64,000 bases of DNA from Macrostomum lignano (taxonomy: Eukaryota), in assembly GCA_002269645.1 (NCBI GenBank), contig NIVC01000695.1:409522-473521 (forward strand). The letters run 5' to 3'. Positions 17,476-64,000 of this stretch are shown here, in pieces. The position numbers and the translations under genes were made by a program. How positions within the stretch are numbered: position 1 is the stretch's first letter; every line of letters begins with the position of its first letter. A model generated the notes under the pieces. That model did not search any database, was not told where the DNA came from, and saw nothing but the letters and a program-made list of their open reading frames with translations.

Positions 17476-19011
17476 ATGTATCCAGACGAGTTCGAGTATC
17501 CAGACGAGTTCGAGTATCCAGAAGAGTTCGAGTATCCAGAAGAGTTCGAGTATCCAGAAGAGTTCGAGTAAGTGTTCACATAAGCTGTCATTTCAAGTCA
17601 CTAATTATATCCCCATTAACTAGCTGATAACTAGCTATCAGCATAGATGTGTCACACTGCACCAATCAAAAATGAAGTTTTTTTTTTCAATTAAACTACT
17701 ACGAAGTTTATATAAGATTGTCACGTTATTTGATGTTGGCCGTGACCCTTAAAAGGGCCGTTTTAGTCCCAAAATAAGTTGAAGTCAACTTAGGCGAAGT
17801 GGATGGTGTAGCGGAGCACTTGGCGATAAAGGCAGGAACTGCCGTAGTTGTCTTTATTGTTAATATCAGTATTAAGTTTGGTTGTTACTGGCAATAAACA
17901 GACTATAGCTTTCTGGGCACTGGCGGCTGCAACAATGGGTTCTTTTAAGATAAATTGGATGTGAGTTCAAGCGACAGACGAGTGAGGTAATGGCGACGTA
18001 ACGTGATGATCAATGGCAATGAGTACAGAAGAGGCAGTGAGACGTAGTAGGCAGATGAGCAGTGGCGAAGTTGGCGTCAGTCGTGGCGTGAGGCAAGGAG
18101 GCTCGAGGCAGCCAGACAGAGAGAAGGAAAACAAGGCCGTAAAAACACACACAAGGCCAAGGACAGGCCGGGAGGAAGAGAGAAGCACAGATAAGGACAG
18201 GAGTGAGGAGTGCCCGCCGCCAGGCGGGGTTTAATAAAGGAGCGCAGAGGGGGGGTAGCGCGAAGCACGAGTGATTTCATTGGCTGGCGAGAGAACTTAA
18301 AATTATCGATCGTGCCAATTTTATACGGTCGCGAGAGAGGATAGCAAAATATACAGTGAATTAGAAATTGCCACAAAATCGTTGGCCATTACTACAAGTA
18401 AACGTCGCAATAAACGAATGGAAAAGTTTAGTTGAAACGGTGAAACTGAAGGGTTGAATGACTATGGAGAACAGCAGTCCAACGGCCCTTTTCAAGACCA
18501 CCTTAAACTGACAACGTCACAAGATTGCTTAAAATTTGCCAATCAATTTACTATCTTACATCTTAATACATGGATATGCCGATCCAATTAAATATTTCTG
18601 CAGCTTCGAGGAAGTCCTGGCTTATGATACTGAGCGTGAGCTGAAACAGCTGGATGATATTGGAGACCATTACTGTGGCAAATTAAATGATATCACGCAA
18701 CTTCTAAACACTATTGGTCTGCCCAACGAAAAAAATGGCATTGATAAACTTGTGCCACTACGGTTGCTAACAAAGAATTTTCAACTGAACAATAAAAATA
18801 TTGATGATGGGTATGAAATCCACCTGGCTAGGGCCGTATATGGCCTAACGTTTTCAGACTGGTAAGTTTTACTGGATCTAAATTACTAGTCTAATGAATA
18901 TTTATTATTTGAATTGCACAGATATTGCCAATAGTATTTAAGATGTACTAAATATAAAAAATAATATTCCATTTCAGATCGGTCACGCTTCCTTGCGGTT
19001 GTGCCATGTAG
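17476..19011 (+). pseudogene. Paralog D of unknown gene family, (YP[D/E]EFE)x5 first exon
   Basis: Exon 1 at 17476-17567; exon 2 deleted; exon 3 remnant ~17630-17678; solo LTR in the next intron; exon 4 open at 18604-18861; exon 5 at 18978-19011. Direct exon 1 to exon 4 splicing would be in frame. Confidence 0.5.
17719..18521. mobile_element. Solo LTR (803 bp)
   Basis: TG...CA ends with imperfect terminal IR (TGTCACGTT / AACGTCACA). 4-bp TSD AGAT at 17715-17718 and 18522-18525. The empty site TATAAGATTGCTT is present in paralog B (~7210). AATAAA at 18409-18414. Confidence 0.88.
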
Positions 19012-26166: not shown

Positions 26167-49604
<23,438 letters not shown>

Positions 49605-49949
49605 TGTTTTATCAAACAGTGGTTTAAGTGCTTTGCTAATTGTTAGCTCGTTGCACAGAAGTTCGCTAACGCTGAGCTCCGTCGATTGCCTCTCATTTCA
49701 TTGTCGATAGCAGAGGTCTAATAACAATAAAGTTCTCTTTAGTTAACAGTAAGTACAAATATATGTGCACAAAACCATGGACTGTGCGCTGAGTGAGGGA
49801 TTGAAACAATTGTAAAAATCCAGGCGTGCACACAACTCTTCGATTTTGTCTGGGTCTGAGGGACGGGCTGGCCTAGCAATTTAATAATGGCATGCGTATG
49901 TATAGCGGGAGTTGGCAGTGAGGGGTTTGCCAACGGTTGCGTCGTTGGC

Positions 49950-50150
49950 TTGCGCAAGTTTCGCGTGCAAACATGCGTATAGTAGCTAGGGGGGAGGCTA
50001 GATTTAAATCCTCGCCGTCTGAGGGAGAGGACATTGTGACTGGAGAGGGACAGAGGGGCAGACAGAGAGAAAGAGAACTTTCATTGGCTGACTGCGTTTC
50101 ATGTCCAATCCTATGATCGCGTCGGGAATTTACTCACAAAAATTGGCGGC
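49950..50150 (-). promoter_or_regulatory. Probable insc proximal promoter region
   Basis: CCAAT-type boxes at ~50083 and ~50105 with locally CpG-rich sequence, 350-550 bp upstream of the insc ATG. TSS not determined. Confidence 0.3.
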
Positions 50151-50560
50151 ATTTGCATTTAGTGCTATTGATTGATTGAAAATTTTCGCGATGCTACTAA
50201 CTAGTAGCTTACGTAAGGAATCTGTTTATTTAATTTTTTAAAATCTAAGGATCTAAGCATTTAAGAAGGCGACAGAGCAAGTAAAAAACGTCGACAATAA
50301 CTGTTTAAAACCAAAAGTTTGGTCTGCTCTACTTTTATCAGCTGAAGACAAAAAAATTCTAGTTCTTGAAGAAGTTTTCGGAAAATTAGTTCATAGCCGA
50401 CTGTATCGATAATGCTAAATTTACTACAAATATACTTATTTTAAACTTAAGGCCTGCATTAAAGATTCTTAAAGTTTCTTCATGAGCGCAAAAATAGCAA
50501 TAAACGTTTTAAAACTTATTTCTTTAAGCAGGTGTTCACGGTAATTCAAAGAGCTCTTAA

Positions 50561-53500
50561 TTACTCTTTGTGGATTCCTGCAGTTTTTGCTATCTCAGCA
50601 TTCAATTTGGACTCGCTTCTGATCCCAGTTTGCTTCAGAAGTTCCGGGATGCTAGCCGCATTTAGTTGCTTCATCAGACTTTTAATGCTTCTGATGTTTA
50701 GCTGTGCCATCAGATCAGAGACACTGCGAATATTAAGTTCAGACATCAGACTTTTGACACTTTTCAATCCAAGCGTGTGCAGAAGATCACTTAGTTTTGA
50801 GCTGCCCGTCTCAACAATCAGACTGGAGAGATTTGAAATATGAAACTGCTTCATCAGAGACGTAACATTGCAGATACCAGTCTGTTCCATGAAAGCCTTT
50901 AAAGTTGGAAGACCCACTTTACGAACGATTTGCCGTAGGTTCTTAGCGTCGAGTTGCTTCATTAGTCCTTGAACATCCGAAATTCCCAGCTGACTCATTA
51001 GACATTGAAGATCAGGAATGCGTACTTGTTTCATCAAGCTCTTAAGGTTCTGAAGTCCGACCTCTCGTAATAGTTGGTGCAGACTCTTTGACCCCAGCTG
51101 GTCCATCAGCTTTGGAACGTCGGTAATGTTAAACTTGGTCATCAACTCTTTAAGATCGTCAAATCCAGCTTCCTTGATTAGAGCGCCCACTGTTCGTACA
51201 CCGCAACGCTTCAGCAGTTGACGTAGGTTCTTTGCGTCGAGTTGATTCATTAGTCCTTGAACATCCGAAATTCCCAGCTGACTCATTAGACCTTGAAGAT
51301 CAGGAATGCGTACTTGTTTCATCAAGCTCTTAAGGTTCTGAAGTCCGACCTCTCGTAATAGTTGGTGCAGACTCTTTGACCCCAGCTGGTCCATCAGCTT
51401 TGGAACGTCGGTAATGTTAAACTTGGTCATCAACTCTTTAAGATCGTCAAAGCCAGCTTCCTTGATTAGAGCGCCCACTGTTCGTACACCGCAACGCTTC
51501 AGCAGTTGACGTAGGTTCTTAGCGTCGAGTTGCTTCATTAGTCCTTGAACATCCGAAATTCCCAGCTGACTCATTAGACCTTGAAGATCAGGAATGCGTA
51601 CTTGTTTCATCAAGCTCTTAAGGTTCTGAAGTCCGACCTCTCGTAATAGTTGGTGCAGACTCTTTGACCCCAGCTGGTCCATCAGCTTTGGAACGTCGGT
51701 AATGTTAAACTTGGTCATCAACTCTTTAAGATCGTCAAAGCCAGCTTCCTTGATTAGAGTGCCCACTGTTCGCAAACCACAACGCTTCAGAAGCTGACGT
51801 AGGTTCTTGGCGTCGAGTTGATTTATGAGGTCTGTTAGAGATTTGATTTGTAGTTCGTGTCTCAGGCCACGCAAACTTTTTATTCCGAGTTGCTTCAAGA
51901 ATGCCATTAGGTTTTTGGAGCCCGTTTTTTCCATCAGTTCTGACAGCTTCTTTACATTTAACTCTTTCATTAGCCCATATACACCCTCAATTCTTGCCTG
52001 AGTTAATAAATCTGGAATGCTTGTCACACTTAGCGTTTGAACTAGCTTATTGAGGTTTGGCGAATTCAGCTTTTTCATCAAAGTGGCCAGGTTTTGAGCC
52101 TTAAGGCGTCGCATTAGGTCACGGAAGTTCAGCTGCTTTAGCTTCTGCTGAAGTGCAGAAAAGCTGGACACCTTCAGAGCATTCATCAGTGTTTCGATAT
52201 TTCGGCCATTGGCGAGGTGCCTCAGTCCGGGGATTTTTTTCAGGGCATGTATACTCTTCAGAGGTTCCAAATATTTTGACAACTTGTCAGTTATTCTGTT
52301 GACTTTCTCGACGACTGGAATTCTGGATATCGCTTTTTTAATTAACCTATCGGCAGCTTTGATTTTCTTTAGTCCCGAAATTGATTTGATAACTTTGCGA
52401 ACTTTTTTCTCCATTCTTCTGAGCTTCCGGAGTCCCGGAATCCTGTCCAACACTCCCGGGCCGTACTTGTCAACGAGTTTTCTGAGAACAGGGTTCCTGT
52501 TTACAATGCCTGTGATCTTGGCGTGTACACCTTTGATTTTTGCAACAGCAGGCAGTGCGTTGAGCTTTGCAAAAACTTTCGTCTTTAACGCTGTAAGCTT
52601 TTTTACAATCGACAGGCTCTTCAAATTTGCAGCTATTTTAGACTTTATTAAAAGAATCTTCTTTACTATCGGTACAGCCTTCAATTTTGTGATGATGAAC
52701 GTCTTGGCTGCCACAAGCGGCTTTACAAACAGCGTCTTTGCAGCGGCAGCGGCGACAGCTTTGAATTTAACGACAGCAGCTGCGACAGCTTTGAATTTAA
52801 CAAAAGCGGCAGCGGCGGCTTTGACTAGGAATGGCACAAAGAAAATTTTTTTGGATGCCTTCGTGGTTTCTGAAATTATTATTAATAATTAACTCAATTA
52901 GTTGGGGTGAATAAATTTAGACAATCAGACAATATAGCTGGTATCTCGTAAATGTATTACGTGTTATTCGATAACAACCAATATGAAAGCTAATGAGCGC
53001 TACGGTATCAAAAATGTACTATTGAGCGCATACATGCGCAACCCCCCTGATTTACACTGACCATGCGATTTACTTTTTGACCAAAAAATGTGACTTACCT
53101 GTGAAAGAAACCATACAGCAACATTAACGCAAATTTTGGGTAAACGGCAGGAGTAACTATCACTGTTCTATAAGGGCTAAATGCCTCGTCATCTAATTAG
53201 TACTACGTCTGTATTCTTTGGGGTGGGCATTTTTGCGACCCCTGGTCCACCACAATTTACGGTGACTAGATCGGCCAGGTCGGCCAGCAGTTGCGCATGT
53301 ATGATTGAGCGTGAGCGTGTGTCTGAGTGCATGTCTGGCGCTTTGCATCAGGGTGACTACCAGCCCACTTGCAAACTTCTACTTGTCTTATGCCTTATTG
53401 ATGTTTACTCACATCCAATTCTTGAGGTCCAACGTAGGCGGGCAGATTGGCAGTCTGGAGAGCATCCTTAGACTCTCTGGCCTCCTCGACATCCAAATCT

Positions 53501-53562
53501 GTTGCTTGACAGGCGACTACAGCGAGCAGCAGTGCAAGGCCGCCGATAGAGATTAAGCGCAT
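50561..53562 (-). CDS. Secreted precursor: signal peptide, acidic propiece, ~770-aa Lys/Leu/Ala-rich amphipathic body with 12-aa repeats
   Basis: Exon 1 at 53413-53562: MRLISIGGLALLLAVVACQATDLDVEEARESKDAL...GPQELD|GTGAGT. Large exon 50561-52869 follows acceptor AATTTCAG. It contains three near-identical 288-bp (96-aa = 8x12-aa) repeats. The phase between the two exons is unresolved (0 vs 1). Confidence 0.75.
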
Positions 53563-54162
53563 GGCTTTCTTTTGGAGATTTTAGTAAAATTTTTAGCGAT
53601 AGTTTTTGAAAATATAATTTAATATTGAGTTTTGGGCGTTGCCTGATCAGTTCTTCGGGTTTTAATAGAAATGCCGCATCCGAGAGACCCGCGAAGCCAT
53701 CCACACGAAAATAGCAGGATATGACAGTATAAAATGAATCCTTGATTTTTAGTTTCGCATTTTCGGTGATTCTGCTAAGCAGTGCATTGCCCCCCCCCAC
53801 TCAAGAGTGCCAACACCGTGATTCTGCAAATTTTCTGTCCTTGCTTTTTCATCTCCGTCATTTTTTTACTCCAGGATTTGAAAAAAACACTTTTGCATTG
53901 CTTGATGCTCTCTTTTTCTCTAGCGAGTGCAACCTCAAGAGAGTCAGTGGTTTCAGCTAAAGAGCAATGAGAAAGACAGAGAGCTAACGATACAGTGCAT
54001 AATGTTTAAAAAAGCAGATTTTTATAAAAGCTTTATCAATAAGTTGTGATAAAAAGTCCGAAAGTGGTATTTAAAATATTAAAACACACTACACTCATTG
54101 TATTAATTTTCGTCCTCCAGGCCAAGAACAGATTATAGAAAATACCGATGTGACGACGTACC

Positions 54163-54840
54163 TGGTGCTAAATCCACTGGTGGTAAATCAGCCTGGTGCT
54201 AAATCCCCTTGGTGCTAAATCCCCTGGTGCTAAATCCCCTTGGTGCTAAAGCCCCTGGTGCTAAAGCCCCTGGTGCTAAAGCCCCTGGTGCTAAATCCCC
54301 TGGTGCTAAATCCCCTGGTGCTAAATCCCCTGGTGCTAAATCCCCTGGTGCTAAATCCACTGGTGCTAAATCCCCTGGTGCTAAATCCCCTGGTGCTAAA
54401 TCCACTGGTGCTAAATCCCCTGGTGCTAAATCCCCTGGTGCTAAAGCCCCTGGTGCTAAAGCCCCTGGTGCTACATCCCCTGGTGCTAAAGCCCCTTGGT
54501 GCTAAAGCCCCTGGTGCTACATCCCCTGGTGCTAAAGCCCCTTGGTGCTAAAGCCCCTGGTGCTAAAGCCCCTGGTGCTAAAGCCCCTGGTGCTAAATCC
54601 ACTGGTGCTAAAGCCCCTGGTGCTACATCCCCTGGTGCTAAAGCCCCTGGTGCTACATCCCCTGGTGCTAAAGCACCTTGGTGCTAAAGCCCCTGGTGCT
54701 AAAGCCCCTGGTGCTAAAGCCCCTGGTGCTAAAGCCCCTGGTGCTACATCCCCTGGTGCTAAAGCCCCTTGGTGCTAAAGCCCCTGGTGCTAAAGCCCCT
54801 GGTGCTAAAGCCCCTGGTGCTAAATCCACTGGTGCTAAAG
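54163..54840. repeat. 15-bp minisatellite (TGGTGCTAAA[G/T]CCCC)n
   Basis: Direct tandem repeats with occasional 16-bp units. Confidence 0.95.
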
Positions 54841-55280
54841 CCTCGAGTGCTACTATGTCTCATATGCTCTATGTCTCATAAAAAAACCTTTAAAATCCAA
54901 AATTTGAAACCTATCCGCTCTTGTTTGATATGTTTAAGCAGACACATTCTTTTGCAGGTAGAGTTAGTTGTAAAACTTAGTAAGAGACCCTTTTTATATT
55001 ATACTCTTGAAAATTTGCTATATTTAGCTTTGCACTGAGTCAAAGGACGTCATTGTCATTTGTACGTCATTGTGCACTGGAAAGGCTTTGAAGAAAGAGA
55101 AACGTATTGGCCTTTTGTGCCAGAAGCGCAAAATATCAGCCTACTGCAGGACCCTAATGGAAAAGTAAATCCGTCTTTTTTTCATAATTTCTTGCATCGC
55201 TCCGTGTTACAAAATCCTTGATTACTTAGCGAGCTCGGCCTTCTAAATTCATGAGATGCGCGCAAACGAGAGAAGAAGCA

Positions 55281-55290
55281 TATATATAAA
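55281..55290 (+). promoter_or_regulatory. Candidate TATA box of the 55370 gene
   Basis: TATATATAAA about 80 bp upstream of the ATG. Confidence 0.4.
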
Positions 55291-55369
55291 CTAAAATATC
55301 GTCGATTTACGAGCTAATTTTCGTCCTTGTTATTTTTCTTCAAAAGATTGCTTACCTGCAAATTGAATC

Positions 55370-56350
55370 ATGCGCTTAAGGAGTCAAATATTTTTCGGAG
55401 TCTGTCTAGCTGTGTTGCTAGTGACTCAGGTCTGCTGCGACAGCGAGAAAAGTCATGATGACGATTTCGATGAGCAGCTGGCAGAGACGGCCAAAAGCTT
55501 GGTCGATAGCGAAATTGGTACCGCTGAAGATCCGTTTGCAGATTTCGATGTGAGTCTAAACCCTTGGAGTTTGTTGGCTCAAGAAGGCGGGTAGATGAGA
55601 GAGGAAAAGAGAGGGAATGAGGGAAGGAGAAGAAAGATGAGATAAGATATGAGGGAGAGAGGGATGAGAGAAGGTGTTCACGGCTGTTCACTCCAAGGAC
55701 TGGGGGTCGCCACACACACCCTCAATTACCCAGCTAATGCTGGCACCCATTTTACAGCTGGGTGAACTGAAGCAATGCAGAGTTAACTTTCTTGTTCAGT
55801 GACACAAATTGTTCCAGTGGGATTCGGGAATCGAACCCCCGACCTTCAAGTCTTTGATCACTAGGCTACAACCCTAGCTGCGACACGAGAGGAGAGGAGA
55901 GAAGAGGATAGCAAAGAGGAGAGATAAGATGAGAGAGGAGAGAAGGGATAAGATAGGAGAGAGGAGAGAAGAGAGCTGAGAAGAGACACAAGCCTCAATC
56001 GAACGGGCTTGCTATTGTAAAGTTTCAAAGGACCCGAGGACGGGATAGAGAGGCTTCATGGGCAGCATGTGGCCTTCGGGTCGGAGCTGTTAATCTTGTT
56101 CAATAGATTTCCGGACCAAAGCTAAAGTCTGAAGTTGAAAAAAAGTTCTAACTTCTGCGAGCATCTCCCATGTTTTTTGTCCTATGGTCCGACAAGTGAC
56201 CGATTACATTCGGTCAGCGTCTTTACCTCGGGCTCTGTTTAGGAACTTAAATTGACGTTCCCTTCTATAGCATCAGTACAATACAAGCTATCTACTAAAC
56301 TGCAGGATGCGGAGAGGCTGACAAAGAAGTGGCAAGAAGAGGACGAATAA
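55370..56350 (+). CDS. Secreted precursor 2: signal peptide plus acidic propiece; downstream exon uncertain
   Basis: Exon 1 at 55370-55549: MRLRSQIFFGVCLAVLLVTQVCC-DSEKSHDDDFDEQLAETAKSLVDSE...FD|GTGAGT. Candidate exon 2 at 56306-56350 after CTACTAAACTGCAG. Confidence 0.6.
55681..55875 (-). mobile_element. tRNA-derived SINE, second copy, in the intron of the 55370 gene
   Basis: Reverse complement matches 22893-23102 (GGTTCGATTC box B, CATTGCTTCAGTTCA[T/C]CCAGCTGTAAAATGG, CCCCAGTCCTTGGA). Confidence 0.8.
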
Positions 56351-56599
56351 AGGACGGTTCGGCAAAATGAATAACTTTTCAATATTAAAGTTGTTTGCTG
56401 CTTCCAAATCAGTGAAACATCGGCGCGAATTTTTGCTAAATAACATCTCCTGATAAATTTGTAATTATTATAAATATATAGTCTCGATAGGTCAGTTTTC
56501 TTCTAACTAAAGGCTGTTGGATTGTCGATTTTTTATTTTAAATTTCTGCTACATGTAGCCATCTACCTGTAAATTTGGGTATCTCTATGTTACTCTTTC

Positions 56600-56990
56600 C
56601 CTCAGATTTCTCAGATCTCCCTCAGATCTCCCTCAGATCTCCCTCAGATCTCCCCGAGATATCCCTCACATTCCCTCAGATTCCCTCAGATCTCCCTCAG
56701 ATCTCCCTCAGATCTCCCTCAGATCTTCCTCAGATCTCCCTCAGATCTCCCTCAGATCTCCCTCAGATCTCCCTCAGATCTCCCTCAGATCTCCCTCAGA
56801 TCTCCCTCAGATCTCCCTCAGATCTCCCTCAGATCTCCTTCAGAACTCTAAAATCTCCCTCAGATCTCCTTCAGATCTCCCTCAGATATCCCTCAGATCT
56901 CCCTCAGATCTCCCTCAGATCTCCCTCAGATCTCCCTCAGATCTCCCTCAGATCTCCTTCAGAACTCTAAAATCTCCCTCAGATCTCCCA
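56600..56990. repeat. 11-bp minisatellite (CTCCCTCAGAT)n
   Basis: Direct tandem repeats. Confidence 0.95.
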
Positions 56991-57686
56991 AAGAGGACCA
57001 TCTTCCCCGGCCTTCCCAGTGACATTTGACTGTCAGTGACACTTGACTATCAGTGATATTTGACTGTACAGAGTTCTAAATCTGTGCCTGCAGGGGGTCG
57101 AGACCTCAAATGCGACACTAATAAACAGCGCTAAAATTTCACTCAAATAAATAAAAAAATCACTGAAAAAAACTTAGGAGACAATATATAGGAGCTGATC
57201 AGAGAATATAGCGCTCGATATTCTCTGGAGCTGATTGATGGATGTCTGATTGCAAATGAATCTTTTTCTACCATAGATTGCTCAAATTAGCGTCTCAAAG
57301 CCATCCCCCTTAGCTTCAACTGGCTACCATAGTGACCATGTTCGTTTACTCTAAAAGCATCTGCGCAACACGGATCTTCTAGCAAACTTTAAACCCGGAT
57401 TTGAACAAGTTATTAGTTTATTTTGCTTGCAAATTTTCCAACCGGAGACAACTGAAATAATCAACTCATGGATGCTTTTCATCACAATATTTTCTTGTCT
57501 AAAATGTCAGTGTTACTATTGTCTGTGTTTTTGCTGCACAGTTTTTATTCTCTGAATATTCATTTTACATTGTGCCGAAGGGCGTAGACTATCAATGGCC
57601 TGTATGAGCTAGTTTAGCTAGCAGGTTAAACGATCTATTAGGGGGAGGGGCGAAAGAGACTGAGATATAAGAGCAGGGAGACACAC

Positions 57687-57706
57687 ACAGAGAGAAAGAG
57701 AGAGAC

Positions 57707-57777
<71 letters not shown>
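57687..57777. repeat. (AG)n microsatellite
   Basis: Direct observation. Confidence 0.95.
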
Positions 57778-57780
<3 letters not shown>

Positions 57781-58103
57781 GATGGAGTGATATTATTCAC
57801 ATATACTAAATATTGAATTTACTACCTATACGCTACTATCACGATATGATATCCTCTGCGTAATACATGTTGCAAAGTTATAGCACTTCTATCGTGAATA
57901 AGGTTATGAGAAGTCTTATTTAAAAAAAGTAATAGCTCTTATATAACTACCCATGGAGTAGCTAATATAGGAGAATAGTTTATTTTTTGTATACGAGTGT
58001 ACTATCAATTTTTCAATCAACTATGTTTTTATGGAAAACGGGTCTGATCAACTGGTTAAAAGTATATCACAGTTTTGTAAACGAAATTTTTTTTTGTTTT
58101 TTC

Positions 58104-58759
58104 TTATTCAAACTCGCCAAAATCGTTGCCATCCTCAATCTGTGGAATCGGGCCGGGCGGCGGTGGCGGCCTCTTCGGCGTCGTAGCTGGCGGCGGCGAC
58201 TCAGTAGTAACGCGCTGCGTTGTTGGCGGACGGGCTGTTGTCAAAGACGCTCGAGTATTTTTAGGTGTCGGTAGAACCGCAGTCTTCTTTGGTCTTCCGT
58301 TCCGGCTCCATCCTCCCCAGCGTCGTCCCCAACGGCCGCGACCTCGACCCCAGATCGGCCGACGTCGATTCCACCCATATCGTTTAAAAACCCGCTTGAT
58401 TTGTTTTGCTGCACGCCGAATCCTTCTGAATCGGGACTGTTTCTCCGCTTGATCGATTTCCTGTTTGTTTGTTTTTTGGTATTGTTATTTTATGTAGACA
58501 TGAACTAGCGAAATTCAATACAACGAGTCTGTCGCTAAAAACTTACGTCATCTTCTCCATCTTCGTAGTCGTTAGGAAGGCTTTCCTCAGCTGAATCTTG
58601 ACTTTTAGTGGCTTCTTCTTCACTGTCAATATCGTCGATGGCTTCAGCTAGTTGATGGTATTCACGCTCTGCAGGGTCATCGTGGTAGCGGACGGCGCTA
58701 CCTGTTGCCAGTGGCAGCAGCGCGGCGGCAAGGAGCGCTGCTATGGCAACAAATCGCAT
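58104..58759 (-). CDS. Secreted prepropeptide (189 aa) with Arg/Trp/Gly-rich cationic core; antimicrobial-peptide-like
   Basis: Exon 1 at 58547-58759 (signal MRFVAIAALLAAALLPLATG plus acidic propiece, phase-0 donor GTAAGT). Exon 2 at 58104-58460 (acceptor CAAACAG): EIDQAEKQSRFRRIRRAAKQIKRVFKRYGWNRRRPIWGRGRGRWGRRWGGWSRNGRPKKTAVLPTP...PPPPGPIPQIEDGNDFGEFE*. A 5'-UTR acceptor (CTTCTTTACAG) lies just upstream of the ATG. Confidence 0.85.
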
Positions 58760-59354
58760 ATTCTTGTATTTTCTACCGGCTGTAAAGAAGAGAAAATATC
58801 AGAAATTAACTCGGCTCCGAGATACAGCTTAAGCGAAAAATTATTATAAAAAGATTTCTTTTCGAATTCCCGGATTTTCATACTCAATGAAGTCCTGGAT
58901 ATGCAGAGCCAACAGTTTGTTTTGAATTGGCTAGTCACTATACTAATAGCATCATAAAGTTTTTTTTTCTGAAAAATTTCAAGCAAAACGAACGAGGCAG
59001 AAGATGCATCTACAGTAAAGCTCAAGTACCACCTGTGTCCATTCCAATGTTTTACTCTTTATATAGACATGGCCTTAATAGTCGTAGCCGCGACTAAATA
59101 AAACAAGTACAAGTATTTTTATTCTCCATGCAGTAGAAATAAATGAGGATTAAGGCTGGCGCATTTTGCTCTTAAGTCTTTCTCGTTTTCAAAGTTCTTA
59201 GGACCGCGTATGCGAAAATATTGTCATTTCAGCTTTTTTATTTCAGTCGGACGATCGAAAATAATACGACACCAGAAACCAAGAGATTTAAAGAGTTAAG
59301 TTAGATTTTGACTTAAAGACTTTTACGACGCTTTTCTCGCTGAAGGCAGCTAGG

Positions 59355-61248
59355 TTAGAATGTGCACAGAGTCTTGACAGATCGGCAGCAACCACTCTGA
59401 CACTGTCCGCAGTAGGTCTTAGCGTTTCCAATGTCGTTATTGTCTCGCAGGTACTTGATATAGTCCTTCCATCCTGTGCACGTGTCGCCCCAGGAGTCGC
59501 CCCAGAAGCAGCTCTCGTCGGCTTCGGGAGCGGAGGTGTCGCTAGCGCACTGGCCGTCCCAGTTACAGCTCTTCTTGTTGCCGCAGGGTGTGCCAACGGG
59601 GGCCCGGAGACCGCCGCCAGTCACTCCGCTTGAAGAGCCGGCGGTCGGAGTGCAGAAAATCTTGGCGCAGATCAGTGCCGGATTAGAAGAGACGTCATCA
59701 GTGAGGAAGAACTTGCCCGGACTGGATGGATAGGCGAGGCGACACACCTGGTCCAGGGTCATGCGACCGCCTTCGCGAGTCGTTGTAGCCATTGAGGAGT
59801 CTGGAGAGCCTTGACGCGACTTCAAGCACTCGGCCTTGCCTAATAAGTTGTAAATTTTATAACTCTTTGTAATTTTTCAAAAATTTTGCAAAAAGCCTGT
59901 ATGTTAGATCAAGGACCACTATGAACACTAGGAACAAGTCTAGTAGTCCTTGTGTTAGATTTGTGCTGCGTACCTGTAGCCAGATAGTTTTTCATGAAGG
60001 TCACTGTGCAGGGAGAAAACCTATACGAGTTGGCGACGTCGCTAAGGGAGTATGACCCCGCAGAAGGCGACATTAGGAACTTGTAAGCCACTTTGCATGC
60101 CGGTTGGTCATTGTCGTGATCGGATCCCATGTTGTGGGCCAACTCGTGCGACGCTGTGCCCCAGCTCTGCAAGCCCTGGTCCTCATTGATGCTAACTCGC
60201 GTGTCCTGACAGGCGCCTCCAACGTAAGCCATGCCGCACACTGCGGTGTTGCCGCCACTCTGGATATCCGTGCGCGTAAACGCCATCACGTGATCGGCAG
60301 TCTTGCCAACGGCGTAAGACTTGATGTAGCCGAGGATTGCACTGGCGTCGGTTGCTGTTCAGTAGCGGATTGAGGAAGTGATAATTTAATAGATTTAGCT
60401 ATTTCAGAATTATTAGCAAAATTTATCGTACTTACCGTCAGAGGAACCAGCTGGAGGCATCCATTGCGAATCAGCCTGCGTCTTTGCCACGGTGAGGCCG
60501 GTGCACTTGACACTCATAGACGGGTTTCCGACGTTTCTGAACGCTGTATCGATTCCGTTCAAAATGTGCGTGTAATAGTAGTGAAGCTCTGTCATAGCTG
60601 CAGCATCAGTGCTGTAAATTGTCTTAAACGCGTTCCACACAGTGTGGTCCAGAAGCAAAAGGAGCTCCACCTCAAGATCTGTAGCAGCTTGATTGGACTG
60701 ACGCTTCTTGCGGCTCATTACTTGCATGACCTTCGACTTGTCAATCTGCGACTCAATACCGTCTGGCTGGGCAATGTTGCGTGTGACTTGATGCTCTGAA
60801 GCACCGCTTGGCTTGACGAAATAGGATGTACCTTCGTGCATCACGTGACCGCTGAAGCGTTTCTTTCCCTTCTCGTGTCGAACACTGATGACAGACTTGC
60901 TCTCGATGTCCCTGTAGTGAGCGTGACTCGCGTGGTGAGCTTGGCGAGCTGAAAAAGTCCTGGAGACTCCATTCTCTCTCACGGTCATTGGCACACTCTC
61001 AAAGGCGTCAGTCTTTTCCAATGGAATGCGGACCTTCTTGTTCGTGCTGGGCAGCTGTATTTCGATCTCCATAGACGAAGGATGCGGTCCATCGTTGCTG
61101 GATCGAGTCACAGACACTGAAGCCTGGGCCGCAGCAACAGCGAGCAGAAATATGACTGCAAAATTGATAAGATAATTACACTGAAAACTTGCTTCGATGT
61201 GTGTTGTGACACATGAATGATAAATTACTACTTACCAATGCGCAGCAT
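59355..61248 (-). CDS. Secreted ADAMTS-like reprolysin (M12B) zinc metalloprotease, 4 exons, ~532 aa
   Basis: Exons: 61236-61248, 60436-61155, 59974-60354, 59355-59839, all joined by phase-1 GT-AG introns. Signal MLRIVIFLLAVAAAQA, prodomain ending in furin site RKKR, HELAHNMGSDHD zinc motif, Met-turn FLMSP, and a Cys-rich C-terminal domain. No TSP1 repeats seen. Confidence 0.92.
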
Positions 61249-63118
61249 TTTCAGAGCGCGGGTCTAAAGGACAATTTGTAGGTTTCTGTTCCACTCAGAC
61301 ACAAGGTTTAAGTGGGCTTATCTTTATCGGCAAGGATCAACCACTGACCGTCTTCGTTTTTATGCTTTTGATCGCAGTTGTAGCGGATATTGGTTAAGCT
61401 CAATTAATTCCTGGCCACGACTTTGGCAACAACGATTGCCAGCTTGGACTTGACCAACTATAGTCATTGAAATGCCAGAACTTACCAGTCCGGATATTAA
61501 ATTCCGTAAATAATAAATTACCCTTCCACGACCCACGACGCTACTAGTGATTTTCGAAAAAAAAATGTTCGTGAGACCGCATCTTCTCTGTCTCATAAAT
61601 GCCATTAAAACTAAAAAAATCAAGCACCAGCAATTTCCGGGGATTGTTATTCCAACTGAAGTCGATCGTTTTTAAAAAATTCAATTCGTGTCGAACTTTC
61701 TTGAACACTTCGACACGTTCGAATTTAAGCTGTAGCATAAGATGCAGGGCAAAATTTCAAATCGATAGCATGCTTGATGGATTCGATCAGGCAACGAGTC
61801 AATAAACATTCTTGATTAGTAGAGTATAATTTTTTATGCACTCCCAAATTTCAAAATTTAAGAAATATTACTACTCTATAATGTTAGCATTTTAGCAAAT
61901 CAGTTGCTTCGCAGAAGTTTCAGAGGGTTAAATGACTGGATTTTTCATGCTTGATGATACAACAGACTGTTGAAAGGTTTGAAATAGCCGCACTGTATAA
62001 ACGCTTTGACATATCGTTGACAGCGAGCGTACGAGTCGTATATCAGTTTGAAGCTGTCCAGAGCACCCCGGGAAGAGTATGCATGACGCATGGGAATGCA
62101 ATTTTCTATATGTGAGCGTCCACACATCGCATTTCGTTTCCTGACTTGCACTAATTATTTTTTAACACTGCATCAAAGTATTTATACTTGTGGTTCGTCA
62201 AACCGACCATCGATCAGAATTCGTATTCACGAGCTTGTAGACTGCAATAAAAAAATTACAGACAAGAATTTCTGTAGCATTGGAGAATAATTGTTCGATA
62301 CTTTCGAATTTTCTTGGAAATAATCTATCGAGGTGAGACTTGAGTTTTTTTTAATTTTTTAATTTCAACAAAAACTTCTTGAGAGAAAAAAAAGTTAAGT
62401 ATAATAGAGACAAGTCTAGGCTAAAACTGGATCAATATGATAGATTGGGCAAGCATAACTCCACCCAAAGCTAGCTAGCTGGTAGCACTTGTTCAAGCAC
62501 GAGTTAAAACAAGTTAAACTCAATACATAGAAATTTCACTTCCGTACATTGTCCGCATTCCACTGCGAGAACAGATCTTGCGTTTATAAAAAACTAAAAA
62601 AACGCTACTGGCAAAAAAGTATTAAAGATAATCATTTTATTCATACTTAAGCCCATTCAATTTGAACTTTATAGCAATACAATCCGAACTAAAAGTTTTT
62701 GTACAATCAATTCTATCCAATCAATTTAATGCAGCGTTTGTTAATAAGTTTCGATAACAATACATGCATCCTCTCCAATAAATGTTTCGTTTAATCGTAG
62801 ATTAACTTCATTCAGATACAGCCCAGAATAAATAGCACTAACACAACTAACTAGTCCTACAAGCAACATGCGCTCAAGGACAACTATGTATGTTAGTTAA
62901 GTAGTCCTTGCATGCGCTGCGGCAGCTTTATAATTAATAAATTGCCACAATATTTTTTACCAAAACAGACACGCCTTGACTGATTAGTCTTTCTTTTTAT
63001 GCATTTATTCTCCTCTTTTGTATTTTTCTATCCGGTATGTTTCTATTAACGATGTAATAATCTCTATCTTACGCTTCAGTGCCCGCAGCACGCGTGGCAG
63101 CAAACCGAAAAAAAACCG

Positions 63119-63936
63119 ATGAAAATGCTGAAAATAGGTGAGTTAACCACAGAACTTACAGAAGCTCTGTGGAGTCAACTGCATATGCTTCAGGAAATTA
63201 CGTATGTTTACGAGTCGTACGTGCTCAATATTTTAGCTATATTTCTGGCCGTCTCTGCGGCAGCCCAGGCCTCGGTGTCCGTGACGCAATCCAGCGGTGA
63301 CGGACCTCACCCGTCCTCCATGGAGATCGAGCTCCAGCTGCCCGACACCGACAAGAAAGTCCGCATCCCGCTGACCAAGACTGCTCCGTTGGATGGCGCT
63401 GTGGTCACTGTGACGGACGGTGGAGTCTCCAGGACGTTCTCTGGCCGACAAGCCCAACACGGAGATCAAGCTCACTACAGAAATGTTGATAGCAAGTCTG
63501 TGATCAGCGTTCGACACGAGAACGGCACAAAGCGCATCAGCGGTCACGTGACGCACAAAGGCACCTCGTATGTCATCCAGCCGATCGGCGACTCTGGGCA
63601 CCGCGTCTCCAAAACCAAAAAAACTGCGGATGGGACGCAGCCCGAGCAGTTGCTGAGTCGCAAGAAACGCCGAGTGAACCGAGAGGCTACCGAATACGAA
63701 GTCGAGATTCACATCCTCATTGATCACACCGTTTGGAAGGCTTTCAAGACAATTTTCGGTACGGATGACAAAGCCCTGACTGAGCTGCACTTCTACTATT
63801 CTCACATTGTGATTGGCATGGACACGGTCTTCAGGAAGCATCGGCAGTCCGTCAATCAGTGTCAGGTGCATTGGGTTAACAGTAGCCAAGACTGAAGCCG
63901 ATGCAAAGTGGATGCCTCCGGATAGCTCGGCTGATG
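63119..63936 (+). pseudogene. Inverted paralog of the M12B protease (exons 1-2 in window), with +1 frameshift
   Basis: Exon 1 at 63119-63137 and exon 2 at 63237-63936, with the same intron positions as the 61248 gene. Shared motifs DGPHPSSMEIE and SRKKR. Frame shifts near 63835 and homology resumes in another frame (SIGSPSISVRCIGLTVAKTEADAKWMPP). May be a sequencing error; the gene continues beyond the window. Confidence 0.75.
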
Positions 63937-64000
63937 GTACGCGCTTAGTGTGCTTTTGTCTTACTTGACATACCGAATTAGCTGCAGGGGGTTCTGGGCG

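Follow-up and report, generated by a model that had tools for sequence, protein, structure and literature searches.

We analysed a stretch of 64,000 nucleotides of the Macrostomum lignano genome (contig NIVC01000695.1, positions 409,522 to 473,521, forward strand), here called the window, and found that its last 13.5 kilobases (kb; positions 50561 to 64000) carry five consecutive genes for secreted proteins: genes 1 to 3, each with a signal-peptide exon that runs into an acidic region, and two M12B metalloprotease genes, proteases A and B. In our view the best explanation, with a probability of about 0.6, is that these are five secreted-protein genes of independent origin, which form an ordinary cluster of fast-evolving, lineage-specific gland-secretion genes. 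The first-pass annotation had described the same genes as a secretory defence or venom island, in which one prepro exon was reused for different cationic payloads, possibly with its own processing proteases. Its statement that the locus encodes secreted proteins is borne out by the signal-peptide exons and the M12B proteases, and its overall picture is confirmed in part: the exons and the protease genes are there, and the frame of gene 1, the charge of gene 2 and the state of protease B are not as described.

Under the preferred explanation, genes 1 to 3 would be mutually unrelated, lineage-specific orphans that encode a polycation of about 819 amino acids (aa), a polyanion of 51 aa and a defensin-style precursor, respectively. 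Proteases A and B would be an old inverted duplicate pair from an expanded ADAMTS-like M12B family. Their sequences show that each has a signal peptide, an RKKR furin site at which the prodomain is removed, and a zinc site that is intact; their likeliest job would be proteolysis in seminal fluid and/or pharyngeal secretion.

Two more copies of the locus occur in this assembly, L001 (NIVC01001390.1, reversed) and L002 (NIVC01001630.1); they align collinearly with the window (91-99% identity), while the segment L003 (NIVC01000695.1:454891-473521) is 100% identical to window positions 45370-64000, the 3' edge of the window (64000) being the end of the contig. The gene order is common to all copies: an Inscuteable-like gene, gene 1, gene 2, gene 3, protease A and protease B. 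The genome of M. lignano is described as neopolyploid (PMC10733133), and the three copies are homeologues or alleles of it; because they belong to one genome, their shared gene order is silent on long-term linkage. Some of the copies are probably decaying or mis-assembled, namely gene 1 in the window and L001, gene 3 in L001 and L002, and protease B in the window.

The exons that begin genes 1 to 3 are as follows, in window positions:

53413 to 53562, minus strand: exon 1 of gene 1, reading MRLISIGGLALLLAVVACQA and then TDLD...PQELD; a signal peptide of about 20 aa and an acidic propiece (net -6), ending GAT/GTGAGT.
55370 to 55549, plus strand: exon 1 of gene 2; a signal peptide and an acidic region, closing with ...ADFD, GAT/GTGAGT.
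58547 to 58759, minus strand: exon 1 of gene 3; a signal peptide and an acidic propiece, closing with ...GEDD, GAC/GTAAGT; unannotated.

Read directly in the sequence, all three signal exons end on an Asp codon (GAT, GAT and GAC in genes 1, 2 and 3) in phase 0, just as had been described: ELD before GTGAGT at 53413, DFD before GTGAGT at 55549 and EDD before GTAAGT at 58547. They begin with MR(L/F), which is followed by a hydrophobic h-region, small residues at -1/-3 and a tail that is acidic (net charge -5 to -17); the signal peptides were called by inspection only. The whole window was scanned on both strands for an ATG, a hydrophobic N-terminus, at least 35 open codons and an in-frame GTRAGT; the scan returned exactly these three exons, all inside one 5-kb stretch, and 30 block-wise dinucleotide shuffles of the window gave a mean of 0.13 such exons, so that three are far above chance. 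Basic sites follow 4-13 residues into exon 2, namely KPRR in gene 1 (in L002 only), the doublet KK in gene 2 and RFRR/RIRR in gene 3. The complete layout of signal, acidic propiece, intron, basic site and payload is thus found in all three genes, for gene 1 only in copy L002.

The likeness among the exons was then measured against shuffled sequences. Pairwise local alignments of the exon-1 proteins scored 24, 28 and 37 against shuffle means of 22-27, the observed score being reached by 58-300 of 1000 shuffles; for the propieces alone it was reached by 117-681 of 1000. For exon-1 DNA, aligned with or without 400 base pairs (bp) upstream and 100 bp of intron, the corresponding counts were 17-161 of 200. 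Protein and DNA similarity both lie within the range of the shuffles, the outcome that had been set beforehand as refuting the reuse of one prepro exon, and we dropped that claim. Dermaseptins and conotoxins have a conserved prepro region, whereas the neighbouring genes at this locus show no such conservation. We infer that the common layout is the generic build of secretory propeptide genes, with charge masking of cationic cargo, and not a shared exon.

It is accordingly highly improbable, in our judgement, that a defence or venom island arose here in the manner of conotoxins or preprodermaseptins, by duplication of one ancestral exon for a signal and an acidic propiece and fusion of the copies to various cationic payloads. 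Such a history would account for the layout, which is identical in the three genes down to the phase-0 donor that follows Asp, for their MR(L/F) starts, for a basic doublet 4-13 residues past each junction and for the strongly cationic payloads of genes 1 and 3, but the similarity of the exons is no more than composition would give, and the payload of gene 2 is acidic. The payloads had been described as cationic throughout, which holds for gene 1 (about +80) and for the core of gene 3 (+22) but not for the mature peptide of gene 2 (-15). We found no evidence in support of a role in defence or venom; the sole expression data, given below, point to reproductive and pharyngeal glands, that is, to prostate and pharyngeal glands. 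We know of no venom apparatus in the diatom-feeding M. lignano, which we also count against such an island.

For gene 1, the following further elements were recognized:

53099 to 53167, minus strand: candidate mini-exon of 69 nucleotides, phase 0, reading NSDSYSCRLPKICVNVAVWFLSQ, set between AG and GTAAGT; frame 0 is open in the window and in L002.
50561 to 52869, minus strand: main exon, unannotated; out of frame with exon 1 in the window copy.
52837 to 50561, minus strand: open reading frame (ORF) of 758 codons, Lys/Leu-rich, isoelectric point (pI) 10.4, charge about +80.
52842 to 52852, minus strand: A/T homopolymer at the start of the main exon, seen in a three-way alignment of the copies.
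50930 to 51823, minus strand: tandem unit of 288 bp (96 aa, 8 x 12 aa), 3.1 copies, 97% identical (Tandem Repeats Finder and autocorrelation).

The ORF is built from about 60 degenerate 12-aa repeats of an LMxQLGIxDLxx-like form, as detected by autocorrelation. Between the window and L002 it differs by 27 synonymous and 16 nonsynonymous changes with no insertions or deletions (indels), which gives a ratio of nonsynonymous to synonymous differences per site (pN/pS) of 0.18, and exon 1 differs by 4 synonymous and 0 nonsynonymous changes. Because this low ratio extends over 758 codons without indels and the differences in exon 1 are synonymous only, the sequence comparison indicates that gene 1 is a genuine coding gene under purifying selection. 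In the window and L001 the sole good acceptor (tttcag, 52869) demands phase 1, whereas the signal exon ends in phase 0. L002 has one more base in the run at 52842-52845 than the other two copies, and since the length of this homopolymer sets the frame, signal exon and ORF are in frame in L002 alone. There the unaltered sequence gives an uninterrupted precursor of 819 aa, in which ...PQELD is followed by KPRRHPKKFFFVPFLVK... and a KPRR site. The shorter run may be an assembly error, as it is a homopolymer in a long-read assembly, or a real null allele.

Use of the mini-exon is possible from its sequence; at 53167-53099 no sign of constraint was seen between the window and L002, the divergence being similar to that of the flanking intron. 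An ATG start inside it (MVSFTE...) was ruled out, as the same ATG is AGG in L002. The short gene 1 products of 64 and 87 aa that the window frame would give were also rejected, as neither is present in the protein collection.

Gene 1 is absent from GenBank, from the UniProt annotation and, in a word-indexed search with the ORF, from a collection of 5.8 billion protein clusters. An exhaustive HMMER scan returned about 50 heterogeneous proteins with about 22% identity, which share only 12-aa repeats of an LxxxLGxxxLKx-like form; they include bacterial eCIS_core, phage tape-measure and MICAL-like proteins, and most of those scanned also match MgtE_N. The repeat region of gene 1 itself matches Pfam MgtE_N (PF03448) with an E value of 5e-16. 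We ruled these proteins out as orthologues, because they come from unrelated architectures and kingdoms and the likeness is at the level of the repeat motif. Gene 1 thus resembles the MgtE_N-type arrays of short-helix repeats in its 12-aa motif but differs from them in that its product is predicted to be secreted, Lys-rich and eukaryotic. AlphaFold2, run without an alignment, gave helices of 7-10 residues throughout at a predicted local distance difference test (pLDDT) score of 47.8; at such a score only the secondary structure is usable, and the model predicts, with low confidence, an all-helical product.

Gene 2 is completed by a single short exon:

56306 to 56350, plus strand: exon 2 of gene 2, 14 codons DAERLTKKWQEEDE and a stop.

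The spliced product has 74 aa and a pI of 4.1 and is identical to GenBank PAA78315.1 (BOX15_Mlig004062g3). The gene is intact at all three loci, with 2-3 amino-acid differences. Its mature peptide, of 51 aa, has a net charge of -15, and the only basic site is the KK doublet, behind which there is no cationic cargo. An alternative acceptor with a 16-aa tail was rejected, since the annotated 74-aa protein fits the downstream acceptor exactly. In the intron of gene 2, at 55690-55880 on the minus strand, there is a tRNA-like segment with a T-arm-like GGTTCGATTCCC and GA-rich repeats on either side, which from its sequence looks like the remnant of a tRNA-derived short interspersed element. ARAGORN and Rfam returned nothing at 55690-55880 and no meaningful tRNA or Rfam result across the region.

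Gene 3, on the opposite strand, likewise has a second exon:

58104 to 58460, minus strand: exon 2 of gene 3, with RFRR/RIRR furin-like sites, a 52-aa Arg/Trp/Gly-rich core (+22), a Pro/Thr-rich tail and a stop.

The gene model is of 189 aa and consists, in order, of the signal peptide, a 59-aa segment (-19), the RFRR/RIRR sites, the core and the tail. No homologue was found by the word-indexed search of the 5.8-billion-cluster collection, and the gene is absent from GenBank and the UniProt annotation. The copies in L001 and L002 have a common 1-bp deletion in the signal peptide that truncates the frame, so the gene is intact only in the window. Between the window and the other copies there are 5 synonymous and 19 nonsynonymous differences (pN/pS about 1.2), and the internal indels, of 3 bp and 12 bp, both keep the frame. 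From these comparisons gene 3 would be a coding gene whose evolution is either neutral or adaptive and which may be on its way to loss in two of the copies.

In precursors of the defensin type, an anionic propiece balances the cationic peptide. Gene 3 is like the alpha-defensins, cathelicidins and preprodermaseptins in that an acidic propiece (-19) follows the signal and matches a cationic core (+22), from which it is separated by a convertase site and which is encoded by a different exon; it differs from them in the lack of sequence homology and of a Cys framework, and in its long Pro/Thr-rich tail. By this analogy an antimicrobial role of its product may be considered.

The features of genes 1 and 3 given above also bear on whether one or both of them are non-functional, either as pseudogenes in decay or as ORFs that arose by chance in GC-rich or repetitive DNA, with only gene 2 and the proteases being real. 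We regard this as unlikely. Both genes are missing from the annotations and from the cluster database, and each has a frameshift in two of the three copies; for gene 3 there are in addition the pN/pS of about 1.2 and long ORFs on the opposite strand. Against this stand, for gene 1, the constraint (pN/pS 0.18) kept over 2.3 kb without indels, a signal exon with synonymous differences only, and the position of the frameshift in a homopolymer of a long-read assembly, where it may be an assembly error; and, for gene 3, a canonical ATG, a signal peptide, a GT-AG intron and indels that are all in frame inside the coding body.

The two protease genes are laid out as follows:

59355 to 61248, minus strand: protease A, gene model with 4 exons (61236-61248, 60436-61155, 59974-60354 and 59355-59839), 532 aa.
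63119 to 63936, plus strand: protease B, exons 1 (63119-63137) and 2 (63237-63936); incomplete at the contig end.

The presence of two M12B protease genes was confirmed, as tblastn finds exactly two in the window. Protease A consists, in order, of a signal peptide, a Cys-free prodomain ending in RKKR, an M12B catalytic domain (HELAHNMGSDHD), a putative ADAMTS-type disintegrin-like region and a Cys-rich tail. The zinc consensus HEXXHXXGXXHD is matched by HELAHNMGSDHD in protease A and by HELAHNLGASHD in the intact protease B of L002. Among Pfam profiles, protease A matches Reprolysin_5 (49.7 bits, cut-off 27), Reprolysin_3 (41.8, cut-off 22.4) and Reprolysin (39.9, cut-off 20.8), with Reprolysin_2 and Reprolysin_4 also above their cut-offs. 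ADAMTS_CR_2 reaches 23.1 bits, below its cut-off of 27.3, and the phmmer alignment to ADAMTS-4/-1 extends to residue 470. The solved structures nearest to protease A are ADAMTS-4, -1 and -5 (E about 1e-13, aligned through the disintegrin-like domain), and the snake-venom M12B enzymes are farther away, with E values of 1e-7 to 1e-4.

The proteases thus share with the ADAMTS/reprolysin (M12B) group the Pfam profile, the zinc motif, a downstream Met-containing turn and the furin-type RKKR. They differ from ADAMTS in the absence of thrombospondin repeats (no TSP_1 match to protease A at E <= 0.1 in Pfam), in the Cys-free prodomain and in a short Cys-rich tail without a Pfam match; because thrombospondin repeats are lacking, we call them ADAMTS-like and not ADAMTS. 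Protease A has no cysteine switch: the stretch from its signal peptide to the RKKR site is free of Cys, and latency, if any, must work otherwise.

Protease A is 99% identical to GenBank BOX15_Mlig018498g1. It differs from the L001 copy by 15.5 synonymous and 3.5 nonsynonymous changes and from the L002 copy by 13 and 3 (pN/pS about 0.07), values that indicate strong purifying selection between the copies. A protein search with it gave 12 named hits, all of M. lignano, and as a 13th an unnamed orthologue of 532 aa with 71% identity, which lies on contigs of about 1.9 kb with one uninterrupted ORF (runs SRR28338163-66); these contigs appear to be mRNA of another Macrostomum species. Because all the named hits are M. 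lignano proteins, the family is taken, from these sequences, as a lineage-specific expansion.

Protease B, which shares about 60% identity with protease A, lies in divergent orientation to it, the start codons being about 1.9 kb apart. Its gene is not intact in the window copy, which has a frameshift near 63835-63840 and is cut at 64000; the GenBank product has only 216 aa. The intact protein has 538 aa at L001 and 542 aa at L002. The intergenic region between A and B differs between copies.

Expression evidence was drawn from published M. lignano data by mapping all of the primer pairs, about 230, that are listed in Table S11 of Brand et al. (2020, PMC7336406) against the window, L001 and L002. 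Protease B corresponds to Mlig001203.g5, with the transcripts RNA815_5875.1/.2, which is assigned to the Tail class and is up-regulated in octets compared with isolated worms (OvI_up; Brand et al. 2020, PMC7336406, Tables S6 and S11). By in situ hybridization the two transcripts were recorded as 'prostate;testes;pharynx' and 'prostate;pharingeal glands' (source spelling; Weber et al. 2018, PMC5977470, via PMC7336406), and the class is described as prostate-expressed transcripts with additional expression sites (Weber et al. 2018, PMC5977470). Primers of RNA815_5875.1/.2 lie on protease B in the window at 63685-63706 (exact) and at 63489-63512 (one mismatch), and both RNA815_5875.1 primers match L001 exactly.

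The forward primer of RNA815_5875.2, which has no match in the window, lies in L002 at 18202-18222, about 440 bp upstream of the protease B start codon; from this position the protease B mRNA has a long 5' untranslated region or an upstream exon in the A-B intergenic region. A primer-like match at 40966 was dismissed as chance, as tblastn shows only the two protease genes in the window.

Primers for RNA815_5404.2/.3 ('prostate;pharynx') match protease B with two mismatches, and the reverse primer for RNA815_5404.1 (Mlig-pro43, prostate-limited) matches protease A with three; the primer sequences indicate that RNA815_5404.1-.3 are close paralogues. Among the five genes, prostate in situ expression, tail enrichment and social sensitivity, the marks of a prostate or seminal-fluid candidate, are on record for protease B only. 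Within the accessible parts of the M. lignano literature and expression tables, only Mlig001203 of four gene identifiers was found, Mlig018498, Mlig004062 and Mlig008682 being absent. The claim of gland-cell secretion therefore stands for protease B and its paralogues, on their in situ signals in prostate and pharynx or pharyngeal glands, and is unsupported beyond the proteases.

In the same gland screen (PMC5977470; PMC7336406), which contains protease B itself and the paralogues RNA815_5404.1-.3, including Mlig-pro43, many entries resemble genes 1 to 3 in being short or orphan secreted proteins missing from the annotation; genes 1 to 3 and protease A are not among its transcripts. Of the in situ transcripts limited to the prostate, about one third failed to map to the Mlig_37v3 gene set ('FALSE' in Table S11, PMC7336406), which suggests a systematic under-annotation of short orphan secreted genes in M. 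lignano, as with genes 1 and 3.

These data raise the possibility, which we hold to be doubtful though less so than the other alternatives, that the five genes form a functional secretion module, co-expressed in prostate or pharyngeal gland cells, in which the M12B proteases process the precursors or act with them after secretion. The Drosophila seminal metalloprotease Semp1 processes ovulin and Acp36DE, and a module of this kind would resemble that case. It would fit with the expression of protease B and its paralogues in prostate and pharynx, their Tail class and their social up-regulation, with the many prostate-limited transcripts that are short unmapped orphans (genes 1 and 3 being unannotated too), with the fast evolution of gene 3, as is seen in reproductive proteins, and with the arrangement of the cluster in two divergent gene pairs, whose start codons are about 1.8-1.9 kb apart and which could share promoters. 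However, no in situ primers fall on genes 1 to 3 or protease A, the adjacency is kept only among recent homeologues of one genome and is uninformative, and the processing sites are of the convertase type and not obviously metalloprotease sites.

The last point also bears on the proposal that the cluster carries its own processing proteases. KPRR (gene 1, L002), RFRR/RIRR (gene 3) and RKKR (the proteases) are convertase-type sites, and since dibasic or furin-type sites stand at the junctions and in the proteases themselves, dedicated M12B processing is conceivable but unnecessary; going by these motifs, proprotein convertases would be the default processing enzymes for the precursors of the locus.

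A bolder reading, which we think quite improbable, is a cluster of charge-matched secretory-granule cargo of the prostate and/or pharyngeal glands, made up of a polycation of about 800 aa, an Arg/Trp-rich peptide with an anionic propiece and a free-standing 51-aa polyanion, and both co-expressed with the ADAMTS-like proteases and matured or activated by them after secretion. If true, it would be a flatworm counterpart of the insect seminal protease cascades. More speculatively, the locus could supply the 'small negatively charged' release factor that Wunderer et al. (2019, PMC6410801) proposed for Mlig-ap1, a polycationic adhesive.

Several points weigh against our preferred explanation, in which five genes of independent origin form an ordinary cluster. 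Of the three copies of gene 1, that in L002 alone is in frame. Gene 3, with its pN/pS of about 1.2, broken in two of three copies and without a homologue, may be non-functional. None of the approximately 230 primer pairs lies on genes 1 to 3 or protease A at up to 2 mismatches. A shared regulatory domain may lie behind the run of five consecutive genes for secreted proteins, and prepro sequences so short and fast-evolving could conceal shared ancestry, so that independent origin is not proven.

The relatedness of the three copies changes along the locus. In the gene 1 region (50400-53700) only 2 sites in 3.3 kb separate the window from L001 and L002 is about 2% off, whereas in the gene 3 region (58050-58820) L001 and L002 are nearly the same (one intron difference and the common signal-peptide frameshift) and both are about 8% off the window. 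Because the closest pair of copies changes between gene 1 and gene 3, this mosaic suggests, as far as the alignments go, recombination or gene conversion between homeologues.

The remaining features of the window are these:

About 26167-26634 and up to about 49600 (L003 1-4235), minus strand: Inscuteable-like gene (Pfam Insc_C, 589-604 aa annotated), the upstream neighbour.
54161-54842; 56598-56989; 48449-49215; about 9.9-10.6, 24.3-24.8, 32.5-33.8, 34.1-34.6, 35.4-36.6, 37.0-37.8, 38.6-39.6, 42.7-43.9 and 45.8-46.6 kb: minisatellites.

The Inscuteable-like gene is the first non-secreted neighbour of the cluster and extends across a long, repeat-filled stretch. Minisatellites are dense in the window, with units of 11-21 bp and longer, and give spurious long ORFs in several frames; one with a 15-bp unit in 45 copies occupies the divergent intergenic region between genes 1 and 2, and one with an 11-bp unit lies directly 3' of gene 2. 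At 78-1633 on the minus strand, integrase-like and reverse-transcriptase-like ORFs in a GC-rich (56%) segment are, by their sequence, probably a retrotransposon pol fragment.

The layout of signal, acidic propiece and phase-0 intron is, alone, no sign of exon reuse. Neither the public annotation of M. lignano nor the protein databases contain genes 1 and 3, both of which are apparently real genes for secreted proteins; gene 1, which encodes an unusual polycation of 12-aa repeats, is under clear purifying selection. Single-base frame problems in the long-read assembly of this neopolyploid genome are probably the reason why both were missed. In biological terms the gain is modest: expanded ADAMTS-like gland proteases adjoin fast-evolving orphan secreted genes. 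Because of this neighbourhood, the locus is a reasonable place in which to seek substrates in the seminal fluid or feeding secretion of M. lignano, with the link between the protease family and its fast-evolving neighbours as a candidate.

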